The notes: generated by a model not told the origin, from the letters alone. A stretch of 64,000 nucleotides of DNA from Hormiphora californensis (GCA_020137815.1 CM035356.1:3906001-3970000), one strand, 5' to 3'. Positions 30,167 to 64,000 are shown, counted from the first letter of the stretch. Numbers and translations: made by a program.

Positions 30167-47696
<17,530 letters not shown>

Positions 47697-48654: not shown

Positions 48655-49775
48655 TCAATAAGGGCGGGATCTGAACCCTCTCTCTCCGCCACTACGTCTC
48701 ATTGGAGGCATGCGCCTGTCTCTCCGGTCCTCGTTTGGAACTCGCACTGCCACGTCCAAATAGTCACCAATTGCGAGTCTGAAAAATGAACATTATGTGT
48801 AACAAGTAGTGGGGAATAGTAGTTCTAAACACTCCTTTATTCACCAACAAATACTAGTCTTTATTCACTTCAAAACCCTTTCCAACTACAACTGTATAAC
48901 TACCTGCATGCTGAGAGGGTTAATTTGTCATCTGGTCCACTATGTGCAACTGAGGTAGTGCCAACCTCCTTAAAGTGAAATACTCCCCTCTTGTCAGGGA
49001 ATGTTAGGGCAAAGTTAAACATTGTACCTGGGGAGCGAGTGTGTTAAATCAATCAATAGGCGTTCTTATTTCATAAGTGAGATCGATTTAAGATTTTCAA
49101 GATGAAAATAAAATTTAAAGTTATAAATGAATTTCTCTCTTACCCTTAGCGTTGGCAGTTGTGTAAACATCTTTAATAAGGTTAGTTAGTTCCTTCAGTG
49201 TGGCATCCTTCCAAGTATAGATCTGTAGCTCACTCCCTGGGACTCGGCCCCTGTGGTAGGCATCCGGTAAATTGTGCTGACCCTAGGGAGAGATAGAGGG
49301 AAGATTAAACGGTTTGAAATTAAATCAGCCATCATTATTGAGATTTTGTTAGATCTTCGGATCTATAGGGTTCAGTGATGGGGAGAGTATTTTGGATAGA
49401 CCCTCCCCTGGCCTAATTAGGGGAGCAATAGCGCGGGAGATATCGAGTGTGAATGTAAGACTTCTTGAGCAACACAAAACCCGGCCGATTTTTGTCTCAT
49501 ATAAGACCGTCCTCTCCGCACCGGTGCGGCTACGTGAGGCCGCGTGGCGCGTGTGGGCGATGTACAGTCAGTGCCTGACAAGCCGATTTAATCTTAGTTG
49601 TCTCGTTGAAATCTTGTGGTGAATTTAACCAAGGTTTGAAATAAAATGTGATGTGAGCATTTGACATGAAACTGTGATGCTTTACCTCATTCACGAAAAC
49701 ACGCAGTAGAAGGGGACATGTCTTCTCTCGGTCTACCGGGGCCACGGCAGGTGCTGCTGTAGCTACCGATGTCAT
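48655..49775 (-). CDS. SAP18: Sin3-associated polypeptide 18
   Basis: 4 exons: VDREKTCPLLLRVF; ELQIYTWKDATLKELTNLIK; FNFA..GTT..DDKLTL; IGDYLDVAV...RSRPY*. Confidence 0.95.
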
Positions 49776-50063
49776 CTCACGGCTAGTTGAAAGTGGTTAG
49801 GAGGAAACAGTATTTATAATGGACGGGAACAGAGTGGATAGGTGGTTTGGGGACAGGTGGTTTTGGGGACAGGTGGTTTTGGGGACAGGTGGTTTGGGGA
49901 CAGGTGGTTTGGGGACAGGTGGTTTGGGGATAGGTGTTAATGTGGAAACTGGGGTAAAGAATAACAAATAAAATAGATATATGAAAGGGGTGACAAATAA
50001 TATATATCCAGCGTCCTATGTACACAAGGGGTGTTACAAAAAAAACCTTCAAAAAAAACTTCT

Positions 50064-54009
<3,946 letters not shown>

Positions 54010-54293
54010 GGCTATTACTGTGGTGATGGAAGGTCATTATTATAATGGAGTTATTTTTGGGTCTTACTGTCACGCAATGTTTGCAATGTTCTAACCCTCT
54101 TCGAAAGAGAGAGAGGGCCGAACAAGCCACAAGGCAACACAATGTTTTGTCAGTACAGAATAAAGATTGGGGACCAAAGAGTAATGTGCACTAATTGGGC
54201 AATAATTAGGTACTATGTAATTAGATGCTCAACGTTAACAAATTGTAATCGTGTAAAAAACCAATAAATTAACAATTGTCTAAACTCTCTCTT

Positions 54294-56959
54294 TCAAATA
54301 ACACTCATGTATTTGTTCGTATCAAGATAACTCCGACCCGTTAGACAACTAAATTCAGCCACTTCATTTTGGTTCATGGAACGAGATATGAACCTGAGAC
54401 TCTGCATCATTCTGAGGTAGTTCGTGAACTCCTCGTGGTCGGGTGTGTTAGGAATGTTAGATAGAGCTGTGCTAGGTGTGTTAGTGGCAGTCATCAGCTC
54501 CTCAGCTGATAGGGTTCCTCGAGTCCACTGTCATTACCAGTCGTCCGGTGAAGTCAGACTGCAGCAAATTGTATGAGATTCCTGGAACGTGAGGGGTTTA
54601 TTTTTATGGGTTTGGGGGCCGACAAGCACTATAACCTTGTTATGTTCTAACCCTCCTAGCTAGGCAACTATAACCCCGGTATAATTGATCTACCGAACCC
54701 TCACAGATGATTTTATGTAGTGTGAGCTATACAACGGTACACGGGAATATATCCCAGGGAGTAGGGACATTAAACTAGGTATATTTGGGACATGGACATT
54801 AAATTAACGCAACCCCCCCCCCCCCCCCCTACGTAAATATGTTTCCCAAATTCCCCCCCCCCCCCCAATACCTGAAAAACCCTTGGCCACTAAATTCTCT
54901 GTTACCTGAGAAGAGGGATATTTTCAGGATCAGGAGGTGGATGATCCCACCAATTCTCAGCAACTGGGCTTCTAAAGTTCTCTAACATGCTGGAGTGGAT
55001 CTCACACAGCAGGTTGGCATTGTCTATCAGAACCTGGGAGAGAGAGGGCGATGTTTACTCAAAATATCGACAAAAGCACAATTGCACCCAATTGCACACA
55101 ATAGCACACTTGCATTATATACACACCTCCAATATACATGCTGCCATTGACACCCCCCCGCCCCCCGATCAGATATGAATAATACGAGTTGTGCCATACC
55201 GTAGTGAATATCTTCTGATCAGTGAGATTCTCAAGCAGTACCCGTATCACATCACCAGACACCAATACATTACTGACTCCAACCCTGGCTACATCTGAGA
55301 GGAGATGGGGGGTTGATCAATAAGATGGGGATTGAGTGGGGGGGGGGTTGATCAACAAGATGGGGATTGAGTATGGGTGGTGGTAGAGCACTGGGGGAGC
55401 CAATACAATAAATTATTCAAGAGCAGATAGTTTTGAACAACAACTGTATGTGATAAAAGTGACTCTAATCTCCTTTCTCTCTATCCACAGATCTACTGGG
55501 TACGGGTGTACTAAAGTAGGGACCTATCACCAGGGCTGGGGGGACTAACCGGCTAGACTATCTCCCTTGAAGGAGAATAGTTGGGTATTCCATCTCTCAT
55601 CCTCTGATAATTGGACCTCAGCCAACTGTCCCCCATTGAGGGTATCACATGTCAGGAGGAATTGCAGGAATTCCTTATTGAACTCCGGAAAATCCATTTG
55701 ACCCTGACGTGGGGATGATGGTTGTGTAGTGAAGGGGATTCAGATCATGATATTGCATAACATTGAAACTTCTTCTCTAGCTATACCCCGCCCTTCTTCT
55801 CTCTTCTCTATCTATACCCCGCCCTCTTCTCTACCTACCCCTGCTGTGTTGAGGGTGGTGTTGGAGGTATCTTGGAAGGATCGAGTCAGATGAAGGGCGG
55901 GTATTATAACTGAACTGCGGGTGCCCTCTGCCTTGTAGTTATCCAGGTAGGAGAGGAGAAGGGAGTAGAGGGTCATTGTCTTGCCGCTACCCCTTCCACC
56001 AGTAAGAACTGCCCGGAAACTGAAATGATGTTTGTTATTTCTGGGATTTCTAGTGTTATACCCTGTAGTCTGTACCCTCAATCATTGAGATAAAACACGC
56101 GACACTCAGCTAGAATCTTGATCTGCCGAACCCTCACAGGGCACGCAGCTACTAGAATCAGGAGGAGTGACAAAAAAGGGGTTACAAAGTTTGTAGTATT
56201 GATAAGAAACATACCTTCCATCTTCATTCTTCAAGATGTCCCTAAAGTGTTCTCGGTACTGTACAAACCCCTCCTTTGACACCATATAAATCCTGGGAGA
56301 GAGAAAAGTTATTGATCTGGCCTCTGGGGAAATGTTAATCTAACAAAATATGTACTGTCCTCTCTGAACCGGGCTGAAGGCATCGTGTGCGATATTACAG
56401 TCATGTAGTATGACAAGTGAAATGTTAATCTGTTCAAACAAACGGGAGAAGATCTGTACAAATTATGAAACTGAAAAGTGTGATATTAATTCAACCTTTA
56501 CCTGTTGTAATAACTGTCTGCCACTGGGTGTGCCCAGCAACTTGTATCTTTCATCTTTAAACCGGATGACAGCTCCCCTTTGTGTTTTCGTGATCAAAAC
56601 TATCAGCAGTTACAAGGTCCTAGATAGAGGTTGAAATAACACAGGATTCGAATTCATGACTCAGGAATGAACATGTAAATACTCAATTAGAAGAAGTCAG
56701 TATACTTTTGGTCCAAGATTAGACTGAGTTTAGTAGTTTCTAGAAAGTATACAAACTCACCTTGTGCTTGAGTTGAGTTTTAACAACATCTTTTAATTTT
56801 AAATCCATTCTAGCGACATCAGCTCCCTCTGGGGCGCGGTAGCGCCCTGTCTTTACGTTTTGGTATGGGCATGTTCTGCTCCACATGTCGCCAGTGAGTG
56901 GAGGCAAATCTGCTACACAGAGGACTGTGACGAACTGTGTCAAACACACACTTTCTCAT
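54294..56959 (-). CDS. DAP3: Mitoribosomal small-subunit GTPase mS29/DAP3-like protein, multi-exon
   Basis: Presequence-like MRKCVFDTVRHSPLCSRFAST; P-loop RAVLTGGRGSGKTMTL; VLIDNAN Walker-B-like motif; C-terminal EEFTNYLRMM..FSCLTGR. One 1-nt frameshift near 56833. Confidence 0.65.
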
Positions 56960-57250
56960 GCCTAGTCACAGGGAAAAGGGAGATATACTGGGTAGGATAG
57001 CGACTGGCTATTTGAAATGGCGGCTAACTTGAAACACCCCCTCTACAGGCCAGCGGGTGCACCAGATTTGGATTTTTAGACATCAGTGGGCTAGTCAGAA
57101 CTCATGCCAAGCTCACTGATTGAGGGGGGAGATGAACTGTTCGCAGTACTGTCTCCATGATCTTGGAGATAAAAACGGGTTCAAGAAATATCAATCAGTC
57201 TACAAAGTTCAAAATACGAAACCAAAACTATAAAACTAAAAATTCACAAA

Positions 57251-57448
57251 TTATCTCTTTGTAGCAGCGTTCTTCATACACTTCTCTAACATCCCAAACT
57301 CCTTTTGACAGGTGCCTTGAACAGTATTTGAACTCTTGATGACACAGTTTGTGTAGGCGGCTGCCTCGGGGGTGCAGGCTGATACTGATTTGAGAAGTTT
57401 CCGGAGGCGAGCACCAGCCGCGGAGCCTGCAGCTGCAGCTGGGGTCAT
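57251..57448 (-). CDS. NDUFAF8: Complex I assembly factor NDUFAF8 (twin CX9C)
   Basis: 65 aa: RLRK..SACTPEAAAYTNCV...CQKEFGMLEKCM, two CX9C motifs. Confidence 0.85.
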   Translation of the reverse strand: MTPAAAAGSAAGARLRKLLKSVSACTPEAAAYTNCVIKSSNTVQGTCQKEFGMLEKCMKNAATKR

Positions 57449-57946
57449 AACAGGGAGTTGTTTTGTTCAGGGAGTTGTTTCGTTCAGCTGAAGAGATGGT
57501 CGAGCGGGAGACCGGGGTCACTTTCTCATTATAGAGTGCTGTTTAGGAGTGCTATATAATAGAGATTGGAGATGTTAGGTTATGGAATAGGAAACTATAG
57601 CAGTGTATTGTCTGGTACCTATAAAACACGCATAGTTAGGAGGGTTAGAAAAATAATTGTAATTCGAATTACAACACAATGGAATAAGAATAAATGTTCG
57701 CTAAGGTTAAATTGTAAAACTGTTGAATTTAAAAACAATCGCTATGCTCCACATCATCATGAGGCCCACCTACCCCTAACCAGACACTCTCAGTAGAAGA
57801 AATGGGCACTATCATTTGAATTAAAAATCAGATATAAAATCTCACTCCTGTGATATCATGAGAATTGATTGTCTTTGAATAACTTAAATTGTTGTGTGTT
57901 AAAATAGAATAATCAGGCTAACGTTAAAACCGTGTGGTTGATAACG

Positions 57947-60900
57947 CTAAAACCGTGTGGGTGCGTCCAACTGTAGGATTTTCATCCCAACTTTGTCTTC
58001 CTCCTTCACAGTGGAGAGATTCTGTGGTGTTAGGAGGATGAACTGACTCTTGTGGATGTTGCTGCTCTTACTGTATTCGATCAGCATTTTCATCGTGATC
58101 CGTCGGTTGAACAAGTCCTGCAGAGAAAGGGTCTTAGAGGGAGAAGAGAAATATGGACGGCTGGAGTGTGTATTTTATGTGCTTTTACACATCATCAGAT
58201 AAATTGGTTAACAAAAGAACAAATGACTCGTATTTTACTTACCATGAACACATCGAACTCATCCAGACATCGGAAGGGGCTCTCCATTAGACACCAGAGA
58301 CTGCATATGAAACAGACAGTAGAGAAGGACCGCTCTCCCCCTGACAAAGACTTGACATCGTGGGTCTTCCTATTCGGCATGTTGAGCTGCATGTTGAGTT
58401 CCCCGTTCTTGTGATCAACCTAGGGAAGTGAGAGTAGGGTCACCTGGGTCAAGAGGAGTGAGCTGTGAGAGACTCACTCCTCTCCACTCTCACATTGAGT
58501 TAGAGTGGGGTGGATGCGGTGAGAGTGGTGCTACCCCCACCCTGTGTCTGTGATGCTTCGGTAGCTCAAGGTTAGTGAGGAAAAAAAGGGACATAGAAAT
58601 ACAGTAGCGAGATATGTGCTAACCTTAATCTGTCCTGAGTAGCCCCTCTGGCTAAGATTCATGGAGAAGAGAATACTCAGACGGTAGGAGATTTCCTTCC
58701 TCATTATGAAATAATGCTTTTCCCTGTCCGCCTGGGCAGATTTCAACTCCTGAGCTAGCTCGTTGATTTTCTTGATAGCACTCTTTTTTCGCAGGTACTT
58801 TGATTTGATTTCTTCCAGCCTGCAATGTGATTGAAGTAGAAAATTAGAACTGTTACCATGCATTGGAGACAAAACAACTGAGGTCATAAAACCATGTCCA
58901 TTGATAACATGTTAACAATATGAACAACGATATAATGGTACTAAATCAATTAAAATTGACAGAAGCTTTCGAGAAGACTATATTGAAGTTCAGCTAACAC
59001 GTTAACTCACTGGGTGGCGAGGGCGTCGATTTCACTCTGGGAGATGCTACTTTTGTTCACCTGTTGCTCTAAATTACGAAGCAACTTCACAATCTGGCCA
59101 GGCTTCTTTCGTGTCTCGATTCTAGGACAACACTGAATGGCCATCGCTGTTCCATCTGAAACATGTCAAAGAATTTAAAAAACTGTGGTCCGATGAATAA
59201 TGAGTTTTTATCACTCATTCTTAGTGAAAGAAACAACTGCAACAAAAGCAATAATCACTAGTATTTTACAATTCCTGACCTTCGATTTGTTTCTTCTTTG
59301 CGTTAAACTCATTCTCCGCTTTGGTCGTCTCAGCCACGATCTCCTTCTTCTTGTTTTTCAGTCTGTCTGCCTCCTGGCTGATCCTGTTTTATAGAGAGAC
59401 AATTATGAGATTCTGTCTTTCTGTTTATAGTAGGGTACTCCGTACTGTGTATCAGAAACTGTAGAACATAGTTGGTGCTTATTCTTACTTATCTCTCTTC
59501 CTCTGAAGAACACCCATCTTGGTCCTCAACTCTTCCAACTCTGACATGATGGATCCGTCTGTTTTAGTACTTTCCTCCCACCTCCTCCTGGCCTCTCTGT
59601 ACGCTTCATCTAACTCAGCTCTCCTTCCTTCCAGCGCTTCCTTCTTTTCAGCTAACTCCGCCAACTGAGCCTCGTACACAATAACATCTTGCTGAAGGGC
59701 TGTGGCATCCATCATCGGGGCCTGAGGGGGGGGTGTTCAAATTGTTCATACTGTATTTAGGGGAGTTGTTATGTTCTCTTCTTTAAATTTGTAATTTGTT
59801 GCAGGGTACGGAGAGAGGGCCGAACACGGCAACTGGGCAAGATATGTTAAACTTACATCCTCCAGATTATCAAGCTCAATTGCCCGCTCGTTCAGACTAT
59901 TCAGCTCCCTCTTTATATTGCTCTGCCTGTTTCTGTTCCCCACTGCTTTGGTTCTGATCGCTTTTAGTTGACCGTCCAGGGATGAATATTTCTGGTTGAG
60001 GATCTCCCTCTCACTTGTGATCCTGCTTCTTGCGTGGGTCAGCTGTCTGAGTAGATCAGTGGTGTCCACCTGGTGGGCAGAGTTTCAGTTAGGATTCAGG
60101 AGTTAGGGATTAGGATTAACGGGTATCAAAACGGCAGTGGACTAATATTATTTCAGGAATAGGTAGATGTAACATCTCACATTGAGCATCTTGGCAGTTT
60201 GTCTGCTGAGATCGTTAGAGTAGACACCCCGGGGTTTAACATCATCCCCACTGAGGGTCCAGGCACTCATCACATTTTTAGGGGCATGCCCAACTATCAA
60301 CCCTCTCGCTTCTTCGCTGTTCTCAATCAGTAAAACCTGCTCCATTGTCGTCTGAAAACAAGAGGTGAATTAAAATGGGGGCGGGGGTGCTAACATGCAG
60401 TATAATAAGAAAACATAATTTGGCCTTCTAAGACCTAGCTTAGTGGTCCATACTGACATCTGAACCATCATTCCTGAACCACCCCCCTCCGATAAGTGCA
60501 AAGTTAACTCACCAACTCCACGAGGGCATTGCAGATCATGTTATCTGACACCTCCAGCATGTCATACATTGTGGGGTGGTTCACATTCTGGGGCCTGTTC
60601 CTACTGATATCATACGTCCCATCTCTGACAGGGTGGTTAGCAGGGTGGTTAGTGGAGTGGTTAGCAGGGTGGTGTTAGTACTTAGTAGGGTGGTTAGTAG
60701 GGTGGTTAGTAGAGTGGTGTTAGTACTTAGTAGGGTGGTTAGCAGGGTGGTTAGTATTGTGTCGTTAGCAGGGTGGTTAAAAGGGTGGTTAGCAGTATTG
60801 AGCGGGGGCATATAAATGGTACTTGTTACTTGGTAAGTAGATGGGGTTTGGCAAAAAAATAGGTACATAGTACAGTCGGACCCCGATTTACCGGGATCCT

Positions 60901-63814
60901 CGGGGGAAAGGGTTTTGCCCGGTAAATCGGGGTCCGACTGTACATATTTGGAGGGTGTATGAATTGAAGCTAGAAACAAGATGGGAACAAGATGTATATT
61001 GCGTCGTCTTTTTACCTGAATTTCATCATGGTTATATTGGGTAAGTTTTCTTTGCAACAGCTCCTGTAAATCTGAGTAAAAACCCCTTTGTCGTGACTAT
61101 CATGTATCACCCAGTTGTGGAGATGACCCTTTATGGCGCTCTCAATCACTGTAGTCCACTTTGCATCCTTTACACGGATATGTAAACCTGGACAGGGAGA
61201 GAGGGGGGGAGTTGGGTTAGGAAGAGAGTTGGATGGAGAGATGGAGTTGGGTTAGGGAGAGAGGCAGTTGGGTTAGGGAGAGAGGAAGGCACGTCCCAGA
61301 CTGACGTTCTGGTGTAAGATGTTACATTTTATGGAAACATGTCAAATAGTGATTAATTAATTTACCAAATGGTCCCCGTGGTTTCTGATGAAACCGGCCC
61401 TGTCTGGCGGCCTCCTCAACCTTCTTTATGAGATGATCCATGTAGGTCCCAAACACCTGGACTCGAGATCTCTGACCGGACTGACAGGTCCTCATCTGGT
61501 CTCCAATCTTTCTGTCTCTCTCCTGATTCGTCTCAAGGTCGTCACTAAAGAAAGGGTGGTGGATATTAAAACACTGTATTATTTGACAATGTAAAAAAGG
61601 AAAGTTGGCGTATTATTATGTAAGATGCTATCGCAACATTTTGTTCTAACCCTCCTTTACTAAGAGAGCTAGAGGGTCGAACATCGCAACATACGTGATT
61701 TGTTTTAGCTCCTCACTCAGTTGCAATCTCTCGTGTTCATATCTAGAGATCTCACTGGACACACTCTGCAGCTCGTTGGTGAGCGTCTCAAGCTTTTGTT
61801 TGCAGTCATCCAGCTCAGACTCCCGTTGGGCTCTTTCCGCCTCTACGTTCCTTTTCCTGTTGCTGAAATGGGGGGGGGGGGGGTCAATTTCAACCACTGA
61901 AATGCAAGTTATGCTAAAAAGTAATGAAAACCTATCAAACTGTGTCTAACTGTATATTTGTGTAACTGTGTCTAATACCTTTCTTCCATATCCCTAATCT
62001 TGTTCTCAATCTGCCTCTTGTCCTGCGTGATGTCCCTTGCTGAAGTCTTGCAGTTTCCAATTTCCTTCATAACATTCGCCACCTAGACACAAATTATTGT
62101 AATTATTGCCGGGGGGGGGGGGGGGCTCTAGTTTGATGAAATACAGTACGAATTCTATTTGTTGATAGCTGGCCCCTAAAAATTACTCACCTCTCTCTTC
62201 TTTGCCTGTACCATACACTTCAATGACTCGCTATCAGACTGCAGGCTACCGTACTTATCACTCGCTGTTTCAATCTCACTCTCAAGCTTCTTAATCTGAC
62301 TGTCAACTGCCCGAACTTCAGAGTTTTTCGCAGTCACTTTCCGATCGAAATCAGGGGCTTTTTCAGTTTTTAGTGAGGTTATGTACTTCTCCAGTGGCTC
62401 TGCTTCCTGTTCCAGCGCAATTACCTAACAAGGGGGAAGTGATACATCCGAGATGTCTAAAAAACTACAAACTGAAAGGCAACTACCGCCGGTAAATTAA
62501 ATGAGATTAAAATCAATTAATAATTGAATTAAATGAAAATCACCTTGCTCCACACTAGCTCATCTTTTGCTGCACTAATTTTATCCCGGAGTCCTTGGAG
62601 TAGGTTTGCCTCTGCGTACTTGCTCTTGGTCGAGAAAAACTTAGCCCTCATTTCAGGTAGACTAGCTTCTTTTCTCCGTATTGTGCTGTTGAGTGTCACA
62701 ACTCTGTTGTCAATCTCCTAAATATGAGATGATGTTACCATAGCAACTACTAGCAACTACAATTACTAGCAACTACAAACATCTCCTAATAAGGAAGGAA
62801 TTATGTTACCATAGCAACTACAAAATCAATTGTACCTGGTAGTCGTTAATCATTGTTTCGAGGTGAGTGGATTGAAGGAAGAACTTGTATTTGTCAGAAG
62901 GTTCCTTTGTAGCCAGGAACTTCTTACTCATTTCTTGGTTCAGAATACTAATTGGGTTGGTAACCTGGGGGGGGGGGGTAAAGTTGGGTCAATGAACCGT
63001 GGGTTGTGTAGTTTAGGCCATTAAAAAGATTCTAAAAAAGAAAAATTGGCTATAAAATAACTTGATATGTCAAAGTCCATAGTTTCAATGCTTTGTCTGT
63101 ATTACTGCTCCCCTAATAATACAGCGTGTTATTATACCTGTATGTTGTAGTGACTAAGCAGGAGCTGTAACTGGTTGTGAGTGCTCGAAATGGTCTTCCC
63201 AGTGTGAGATTTCAACTTGTAGTAACTTTGTGACTTAGCAATCTTCCTCTCTACAGTTACCGTATCGCCGTAATCCTGGAAATGTGCAATAACTTTATAA
63301 ACAGTGAAAGAACAATACTGGCTACAAAATTCTCTGAGAAGGGAGATCTCTAACCTCGTAGTTCCAAGCTGATTGTTTATCATTAGTGTTACAAAGGGTG
63401 ACAGTCACTTTAGCGTATGTGGATCCCTGTTTGATAAACTCTGTAATGTTGGCACCTCTGTTTGTAGCGTTACTCTTACCGCCTAGCCCTATCAGCAGGG
63501 CCATCAGGATAGCTGATTTACCACCTGAGACAAGGTAAGATCGTTAGGACATTATCATTCTCGACCAGGTAAAATAATACGGGAAAGTTTGGCAGACTAA
63601 TTAAAACTCGGTCTAACTTACTCCCGTTTCGGCCCACAATAAATGTTATCGAAGGGGCTAGTTCCACTTCAAAGTATTCGTGACACATGAAGTTCTCAAG
63701 TTCGATCTTCATAATACTGCCGGGGACATGACGTGGCTCTGCTAACGAATCAGTAATCTTCTTCTTTTTCGACGAGCCGCTCGGACCGTCGGGGGATCGC
63801 TTTACTTTCGACAT
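57947..63814 (-). CDS. SMC6: Structural maintenance of chromosomes protein 6, multi-exon
   Basis: [17 protein letters not shown] Walker [12 protein letters not shown]; coiled-coil exons; [13 protein letters not shown] signature; [13 protein letters not shown]; QFILLTPQ. Confidence 0.95.
60626..60793. repeat. 12-bp tandem repeat (AGGGTGGTTAGY) abutting an SMC6 acceptor
   Basis: Direct reading. Confidence 0.85.
60873..60940. mobile_element. 68-bp CAGTCGGACCCCGATTTA MITE
   Basis: Perfect TIRs with TA TSD. Confidence 0.9.
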
Positions 63815-64000
63815 TTTTTGAAGTTTCACTCAGACATGGTTCTAATGGGAAAATATGGTATTATCTTCCTTCCACGCCTTGTGAGAAAACAAGCTTTGGC
63901 CAAGAAAAGAGACAGAAACGATGTTTGTTGACAGTTAGAGGAGAAAAAAAACTAGCCAAAAAGGAAAAAGCGAAAGAAATAAAGTTTTTTTTTTTTAATT

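Follow-up and report, generated by a model that had tools for sequence, protein, structure and literature searches.

A cluster of five housekeeping genes in the ctenophore Hormiphora californensis is described here that may be transcribed, in part, as a single polycistronic unit. The cluster lies on the minus strand of a window of 64,000 nt (contig 7, 3,906,001-3,970,000; all positions below are counted from the first nucleotide of this window unless stated otherwise) in an assembly of 110,691,255 bp and 45 contigs. The published assembly of this species comprises 110 Mb in 44 scaffolds (PMC8527503). On the evidence of the sequence, the reading preferred is partial co-transcription, most plausibly of SMC6, a CHCH gene and a DAP3-like gene, with the common transcript resolved by spliced leader (SL) trans-splicing and possibly with internal promoters. 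The probability of this reading is put at about 0.42, and the cluster is regarded as a credible but unproven operon. The gene layout, the quality of the acceptor sites, the SL of the host and the single-copy status of the genes were observed directly, and these observations are presented first.

Results

Five Unrelated Genes Lie Head to Tail

The genes are arranged in the order SMC6 > CHCH ('NDUFAF8') > DAP3-like > PFDN4 > SAP18. The start and stop codons proposed in an initial sequence-only reading of the window, and the resulting stop-to-ATG gaps of 498, 291, 284 and 288 nt, were found to be exact. The AG dinucleotides to which that reading drew attention, with the G at 63842, 57488, 56962, 54018 and 49783, also lie where they were placed, at 27, 39, 2, 8 and 7 nt, respectively, before the named ATGs. 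Averaged over the genome, there is one gene per 7.8 kb (14,265 genes). A search of the genome found all five genes to be single copy, and the same search revealed no retrocopy preserving a leader junction for any of them.

Gene identities were searched exon by exon; checks of the exon chains were limited to their length and to whether the frame stayed open. The coding region of SMC6, the first gene of the cluster (57947-63814, minus strand), consists of ~19-20 exons and encodes ~1078 aa by exon chain. Its Walker-A exon 1 matched AAA_23, and its C-terminal exon matched human SMC6 in the PDB (E=4.8e-17), ahead of SMC5 and SMC1. PFDN4 (50064-54009, minus strand; exons 54009-53905, 50529-50427 and 50248-50064; 130 aa) was identified by a match of its last exon to prefoldin subunit 4 in the PDB (E=5.4e-8), together with a Prefoldin_2 match. 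The last gene, SAP18 (48655-49775, minus strand; exons 49775-49686, 49282-49144, 49027-48904 and 48778-48655; ~158 aa), gave matches to Pfam SAP18 (PF06487) on three exons (2.1e-6, 4.4e-12 and 1.9e-4) that are consecutive on the profile, at positions 1-25, 19-69 and 64-112. Exon 1 of SAP18 is 78-84% identical to genomic open reading frames (ORFs) of a related species (P0001-P0003; ENA contigs of 644-796 nt) that have the same starting Met.

The names given earlier to these three genes were confirmed, and those of the two genes between them held only in part. The gene named NDUFAF8 (57251-57448, minus strand) is a single exon encoding a 65-aa protein that can be described as a twin-Cx9C CHCH protein, with CHCH, Cmc1 and CX9C matches below threshold. 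Its best PDB match was the CHCH domain of NDUFA8 (E=2.5e-4), its look-alikes in the protein Atlas were Cx9C proteins, and NDUFAF8 was not singled out by the PDB, relaxed Pfam or protein Atlas searches. The gene named DAP3 (54294-56959, minus strand) is a P-loop NTPase gene for which a single, sub-threshold DAP3 Pfam match (PF10236) was obtained, on the P-loop exon only (E=0.0077; 15.9 bits against a cutoff of 23.1, single exons being searched). Other P-loop families outscored DAP3 on that exon, the five other exons gave no DAP3 match, and no match was found in the PDB. The DAP3 name thus appears weakly supported by the exon sequences, and the gene is referred to as DAP3-like.

Strong Acceptors Precede Three Genes in an SL Trans-splicing Host

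The 44-nt SL of H. californensis is present on at least 56% of Iso-Seq reads, and more than half of the annotated transcripts start with AG (PMC8527503). In the assembly, the 21-nt 3' part of the published SL has ~683 genomic copies, compared with 0 for a reversed control. The copy number and the share of reads with the leader bear out the earlier premise of an SL trans-splicing host. No SL copy was found within the window, and an Rfam scan of the window gave no match.

The AGs were scored with acceptor and donor matrices built from 23 credible cis introns of the cluster's own genes. The cis acceptors of the cluster have C-rich pyrimidine tracts and a leave-one-out median score of 7.8. The candidate SL acceptors of SMC6 (63842-63843), CHCH (57488-57489) and the unpaired acceptor before the DAP3-like gene (56962-56963), all on the minus strand, scored 7.9, 6.4 and 7.7, respectively. 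All three fall within the top 4% of 1015 regional AGs and rank first, or close to it, within their own gaps; among sampled random intronic positions, none had within 45 nt an AG matching these scores. Within 180 nt upstream of SMC6, no AG other than the candidate acceptor, 27 nt before the ATG, reaches the 95th percentile, and a 3-codon mini upstream ORF (uORF; 63826-63837) lies between this AG and the ATG. The AG of CHCH is the best in the 498-nt gap, and the 39-nt leader between it and the ATG is a tandem array of 2.2 copies of a 17-nt unit (57451-57487, minus strand). We infer SL addition at the AGs of the cluster, as we do read-through of the gaps and the positions of polyadenylation within them.

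As a separate observation, the acceptors of SMC6 introns (e.g. 62965-63137 and 61863-61978, minus strand) often contain runs of 10-15 C in place of a mixed pyrimidine tract, whereas T and C are mixed in the candidate trans-splice acceptors.

Donor-like GTs Are No More Frequent than Chance

The initial reading held that each ATG is preceded by a pyrimidine tract plus AG with no obvious partner donor. The tract and AG are of intron grade for three of the five genes and weak for PFDN4 and SAP18, and the statement about donors roughly holds, in that the gaps show no excess of donor-like GTs over chance. Three such GTs are present in the 498-nt gap, at 57845, 57780 and 57773, so that a cis-spliced leader exon there is possible. 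They scored 6.0-7.9, compared with a cis median of 6.2, and lie 285-357 nt upstream of 57488, an arrangement that could in principle yield cis-spliced bicistronic or chimeric mRNAs, for example from a donor in the SMC6 3' untranslated region (UTR) to the acceptor at 57488. This explanation is considered very improbable, given that the number of donors is that expected by chance for a 498-nt gap and that the other gaps lack a usably spaced donor; before PFDN4, donor-like GTs lie only 49-77 nt from the AG.

The Gaps Have Stayed Short, with Little Room for a Promoter of the DAP3-like Gene

The gap between CHCH and the DAP3-like gene contains a truncated foldback miniature inverted-repeat transposable element (MITE), of which only the right arm is present (56992-57120, minus strand). 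There are 78 matches to this element across the genome, most of them 79-97% identical and many arranged as inverted pairs. The end of the MITE is 29 nt upstream of the acceptor AG at 56962 and 33 nt before the ATG at 56959. Given this spacing, a pre-mRNA using 56962 must start either inside the MITE or no more than 130 nt past the CHCH stop codon. A start within those 130 nt is in or over the CHCH 3' UTR, and little room is left for a promoter of the DAP3-like gene. The full form of the MITE is ~220 bp and palindromic, and the element carries a GCCGCCATTT (YY1-like) word.

Across the four gaps, the only insertions are this 129-nt MITE fragment and a 100-nt minisatellite in the PFDN4-to-SAP18 gap, identified by Tandem Repeats Finder as 6.6 copies of a 15-nt unit (49836-49936). 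By contrast, intron 1 of PFDN4 (50530-53904) extends over 3.4 kb and contains ~900 bp of (GA)n in four blocks, as well as four or more pieces of dispersed repeats. Copies of these pieces, 90-97% identical, number in the dozens, and one of them lies at ~22917-23406 (plus strand) in the window. The region upstream of SMC6 is likewise repeat-rich, and no clear host gene was seen in the next 9 kb. That all gaps have stayed below 500 nt while this intron and the region upstream of SMC6 have filled with repeats fits a constraint on gap length.

Observations That Weigh against Co-transcription

Several observations count against the partial co-transcription proposed here, and the first concerns the two most downstream genes. 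The candidate acceptor AG of PFDN4 (54018-54019, minus strand), 8 nt before the ATG, scored only 2.5 (90th percentile; null fraction 0.17), and that of SAP18 (49783-49784, minus strand), 7 nt before the ATG, scored 3.6 (92nd percentile; null fraction 0.06). The branch-like motif CTAAC noted earlier for SAP18 was found, 17 nt before this AG. A protein word search with the exon-1 ORF for an in-frame leader ahead of the SAP18 ATG returned related-species genomic ORFs only. Searches of JGI metagenomes and metatranscriptomes were blank, both for a leader-to-SAP18 junction pattern and for the CHCH protein.

The second concerns the 5' end of the DAP3-like gene. Two nucleotides after the AG, an ATG is present at 56959 as claimed, but it is out of frame with the body of the first exon, which ends at a very strong donor (56760); the in-frame ATG is found 74 nt downstream, at 56885. 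Three-frame translation revealed that the ATG at 56959 opens an ORF of 46 codons plus a stop (56819-56959, minus strand); this ORF is read in a frame other than that of the DAP3-like exon and runs across the ATG at 56885. Splicing at 56962 would put this out-of-frame AUG and its 46-codon ORF first on the DAP3-like mRNA. A weaker alternative acceptor (56910-56911; score 1.7) is also present, and its use would make 56885 the first AUG. Three readings of the 5' end are therefore possible: an overlapping uORF, use of the acceptor at 56910, or a transcription start downstream of 56959. A frame-repairing intron of 76 nt would have a poor acceptor (score -3.9) and would be the shortest credible intron of the cluster.

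The third is the occurrence of TATA-like motifs in the gaps. Three of the five AGs are preceded by the hexamer TATAA[AT] at a distance of 26-45 nt: 45 nt for CHCH, 26 nt for PFDN4 and 35 nt for SAP18. The hexamer occurs 17 times in 24 kb on this strand, and in 5000 random draws of anchor positions the probability that at least three of five anchors have the hexamer at that distance was ~0.001. This value is suggestive only, because both the motif and the distance window were chosen after the data had been seen. The form before PFDN4 is TATAAT, beginning at 54044, and TATAAT also precedes the CHCH gene. Before SAP18, the motif forms the consensus TATAAATA (49811-49818, minus strand), 35 nt before the AG and 43 nt before the ATG; the 24 kb of this strand contain just one other TATAWAWR match. 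Judged from its sequence and position, TATAAATA would serve either as a TATA box or as the UAUAAA poly(A) signal of PFDN4.

In Ciona and human, TATA boxes are located at -32 to -29, and efficient trans-splicing in C. elegans needs at least 51 nt upstream of the acceptor (PMC4691747). Starts directed by the motifs would leave outrons of ~15 nt for CHCH, 0 nt for PFDN4 and 5 nt for SAP18. Given the TATA spacing and the need for an outron of at least 51 nt (PMC4691747), one transcript cannot both start at the motif and be trans-spliced at the AG. If the motifs are promoters, the weak AGs of PFDN4 and SAP18 are coincidental; if, instead, the AGs act as acceptors, transcription of the precursor has to start farther upstream than the motif, within or over the 3' UTR of the upstream gene. 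The same reasoning bears on the fallback of the sequence-only reading, in which each gene is trans-spliced on its own from a very short outron. CHCH is compatible with this fallback; for PFDN4 and SAP18 it is a poor fit, as a TATA-driven start would leave these genes an outron of no more than 5 nt. The motifs in the gaps may, on their sequence and spacing, mark internal promoters.

Taken further, such promoters would make the cluster five independent compact units, with a promoter in each gap and with the tight spacing reflecting local compaction. This is a serious alternative that we rate as somewhat short of an even chance. Some mRNAs, namely those of SMC6, CHCH and the DAP3-like gene, would then be trans-spliced singly from short outrons, while PFDN4 and SAP18 would start ~30 nt past the TATA-like motifs and carry very short unspliced leaders. 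The hexamers before three of five AGs, including TATAAATA, speak for this arrangement, as does the finding that the weakest acceptors, those of PFDN4 and SAP18, belong to the genes in which TATAA[AT] is nearest the AG; yet the P value of ~0.001 is post hoc, and the 5' UTRs implied for these two genes, of ~5-13 nt, are unusually short. The 10-mer TCCATTATAA shared before PFDN4 and SAP18, tried as a promoter motif around the two hexamers, was rejected because it is not enriched (424 genomic copies compared with 428 for the control). At the same distance, neither SMC6 nor the DAP3-like gene has the hexamer, nor does MCMBP, a neighbouring gene, yet all three have strong acceptors right before the ATG. 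With transcription starting near 56957, the DAP3-like mRNA would lack the out-of-frame AUG, but the promoter of this gene would need to sit in the young MITE fragment or in the CHCH 3' UTR. A promoter and an outron would fit in the 498-nt gap, and repeat insertions are tolerated in the gaps.

Independent units are also favoured by hexamers outside the cluster: one precedes the ATG of a non-clustered MATH-BTB gene by 58 nt, and another the first ATG of a secreted-protein gene by 16 nt. Together with one at a possible protease gene start, these out-of-cluster motifs (window positions 41651, 47243, 5971 and others) lie 16-58 nt before first ATGs and suggest very short leaders or a TATA-proximal promoter architecture.

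The fourth line of contrary evidence is the composition of the gaps. No 6-8-mer is shared across them above shuffled expectation, and AATAAA and ATTAAA are absent from all four; AATAAA occurs only past the last gene, at +343. The latter pattern would fit an operon of the Ciona or 'SL1' type comprising all five genes, in which there is no spacer, the gaps are 3' UTRs, the A/T-rich hexamer is the poly(A) signal of the upstream gene, and cleavage and trans-splicing nearly coincide. Here, the 28 nt between the end of TATAAA, a known variant of AAUAAA, and the SAP18 AG are the spacing normally found between a poly(A) signal and its cleavage site, and a single leader would serve all genes as it does in tunicate operons. 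A role of the motif as a poly(A) signal is plausible only for TATAAA: the TATAAT found before PFDN4 and CHCH is not a usual poly(A) signal, no such hexamer is present in the CHCH-to-DAP3-like gap, and the motif also precedes genes without a close upstream neighbour. Given, in addition, that the acceptors of PFDN4 and SAP18 are weak, a five-gene operon of this type is considered unlikely.

Finally, the published account of the genome covers leader addition only, with 0 occurrences of operons or polycistronic RNA in its text (PMC8527503), and operons are unreported in ctenophores (PMC7986045), which is in keeping with independent units. Ctenophore operons have remained unpublished although the H. 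californensis annotation was manually curated from Iso-Seq reads.

Boundaries of the Cluster and Neighbouring Features

Given that no clear host gene is present in the 9 kb upstream of SMC6 and that a 1.5-kb gap follows SAP18, the five-gene cluster is delimited on both sides. Beyond the downstream gap lie further minus-strand genes, namely two secreted-protein paralogues and the MATH-BTB gene. On the upstream side, a retroelement fragment on the same strand terminates in an A-run (63985-63996, minus strand) located ~170 nt 5' of the SMC6 ATG, and a 140-nt T/C-rich stretch follows the A-run. The fragment has an ORF of 331 aa just past the end of the window (L007:1250-2245, minus strand; contig 7, ~3,970,250-3,971,245), which gave no Pfam match. 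By eye, this ORF resembles what we take to be the cysteine/histidine and endonuclease tail of site-specific long interspersed nuclear elements.

In the region 45794-47143 (minus strand), two tandem paralogous exons of 148 aa were observed, ~300 nt apart and without a Pfam match, and a separate signal-peptide exon lies beside them near 47030-47143 (minus strand). This region is probably a duplicated secreted-protein gene.

Discussion

The arrangement of the cluster could be explained by the following model. RNA polymerase II would start upstream of SMC6 and continue into the CHCH and DAP3-like genes. Each upstream message would be cut and polyadenylated within the gap, and the downstream message would gain its cap and the 44-nt leader by trans-splicing, the sites used being 63842, 57488 and 56962 (or 56910). 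PFDN4 and SAP18 would more likely have start sites of their own, given their weak acceptors and the TATA-like motifs at promoter distance, and the unit as a whole would then be a 'hybrid'. The classes to which the genes belong (chromosome maintenance, mitochondrial, chaperone and chromatin) support shared transcription, such classes being enriched in known operons (PMC12460157).

The TATA-like motifs make a specific prediction for PFDN4 and SAP18: reads carrying the leader should map to 54018 and 49783, or else capped transcripts should begin near 54014 and 49788. Given that public Iso-Seq and RNA-seq reads for H. californensis exist, the cluster offers a cheap and concrete test locus, although by itself it is one of many similar candidates in the genome. 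SL-resolved operons are known from nematodes, tunicates, flatworms, chaetognaths and some protists, and ctenophores are one of the two candidate sister groups of all other animals. If the proposal is correct, the cluster would exemplify a genome-wide system of operons in ctenophores, a phylum from which none has been reported. Such operons would bear on how often leader trans-splicing and operons arise together, and on gene regulation in a lineage with an unusual genome architecture.

Comparison with Known Operon Systems

The cluster shares with the SL2-type operons of C. elegans, which have intercistronic regions of ~100 nt, a set of co-oriented housekeeping and mitochondrial genes, gaps of a few hundred nucleotides, candidate unpaired 3' splice sites just before downstream ATGs and a host that performs SL trans-splicing. 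It differs in lacking a known specialised downstream leader, a shared or U-rich gap element and canonical poly(A) hexamers, and in having TATA-like motifs in two to three of its gaps.

Tunicate operons (Ciona and Oikopleura) use one SL and have little or no spacer. The likeness in this case is that one leader would serve both the first and the downstream genes, and that an A/T-rich hexamer lies 26-45 nt before three AGs, as when a poly(A) signal abuts the acceptor. By contrast with the tunicates, only TATAAA among the hexamers of the cluster is a recognised poly(A) variant. In Ciona, TSS-seq (transcription start site sequencing) placed a single promoter at the operon head (PMC4691747).

For the chaetognath Paraspadella gotoi, an operon was defined from RNA-seq leader reads as a group of at least two genes with spacings below 250 bp, of which one or more carries a leader (PMC12460157). 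The bias of chaetognath operons towards housekeeping genes is also seen here. The distances given for the cluster differ from the chaetognath measure in being stop-to-ATG distances of 284-498 nt, and, as judged from these, the cluster would probably come within the chaetognath definition once its UTRs are mapped. A further comparison is with SL trans-splicing in H. californensis itself (PMC8527503), in which the genome and the leader are the same and the AG at transcript starts matches the acceptors found near the ATGs of the cluster.

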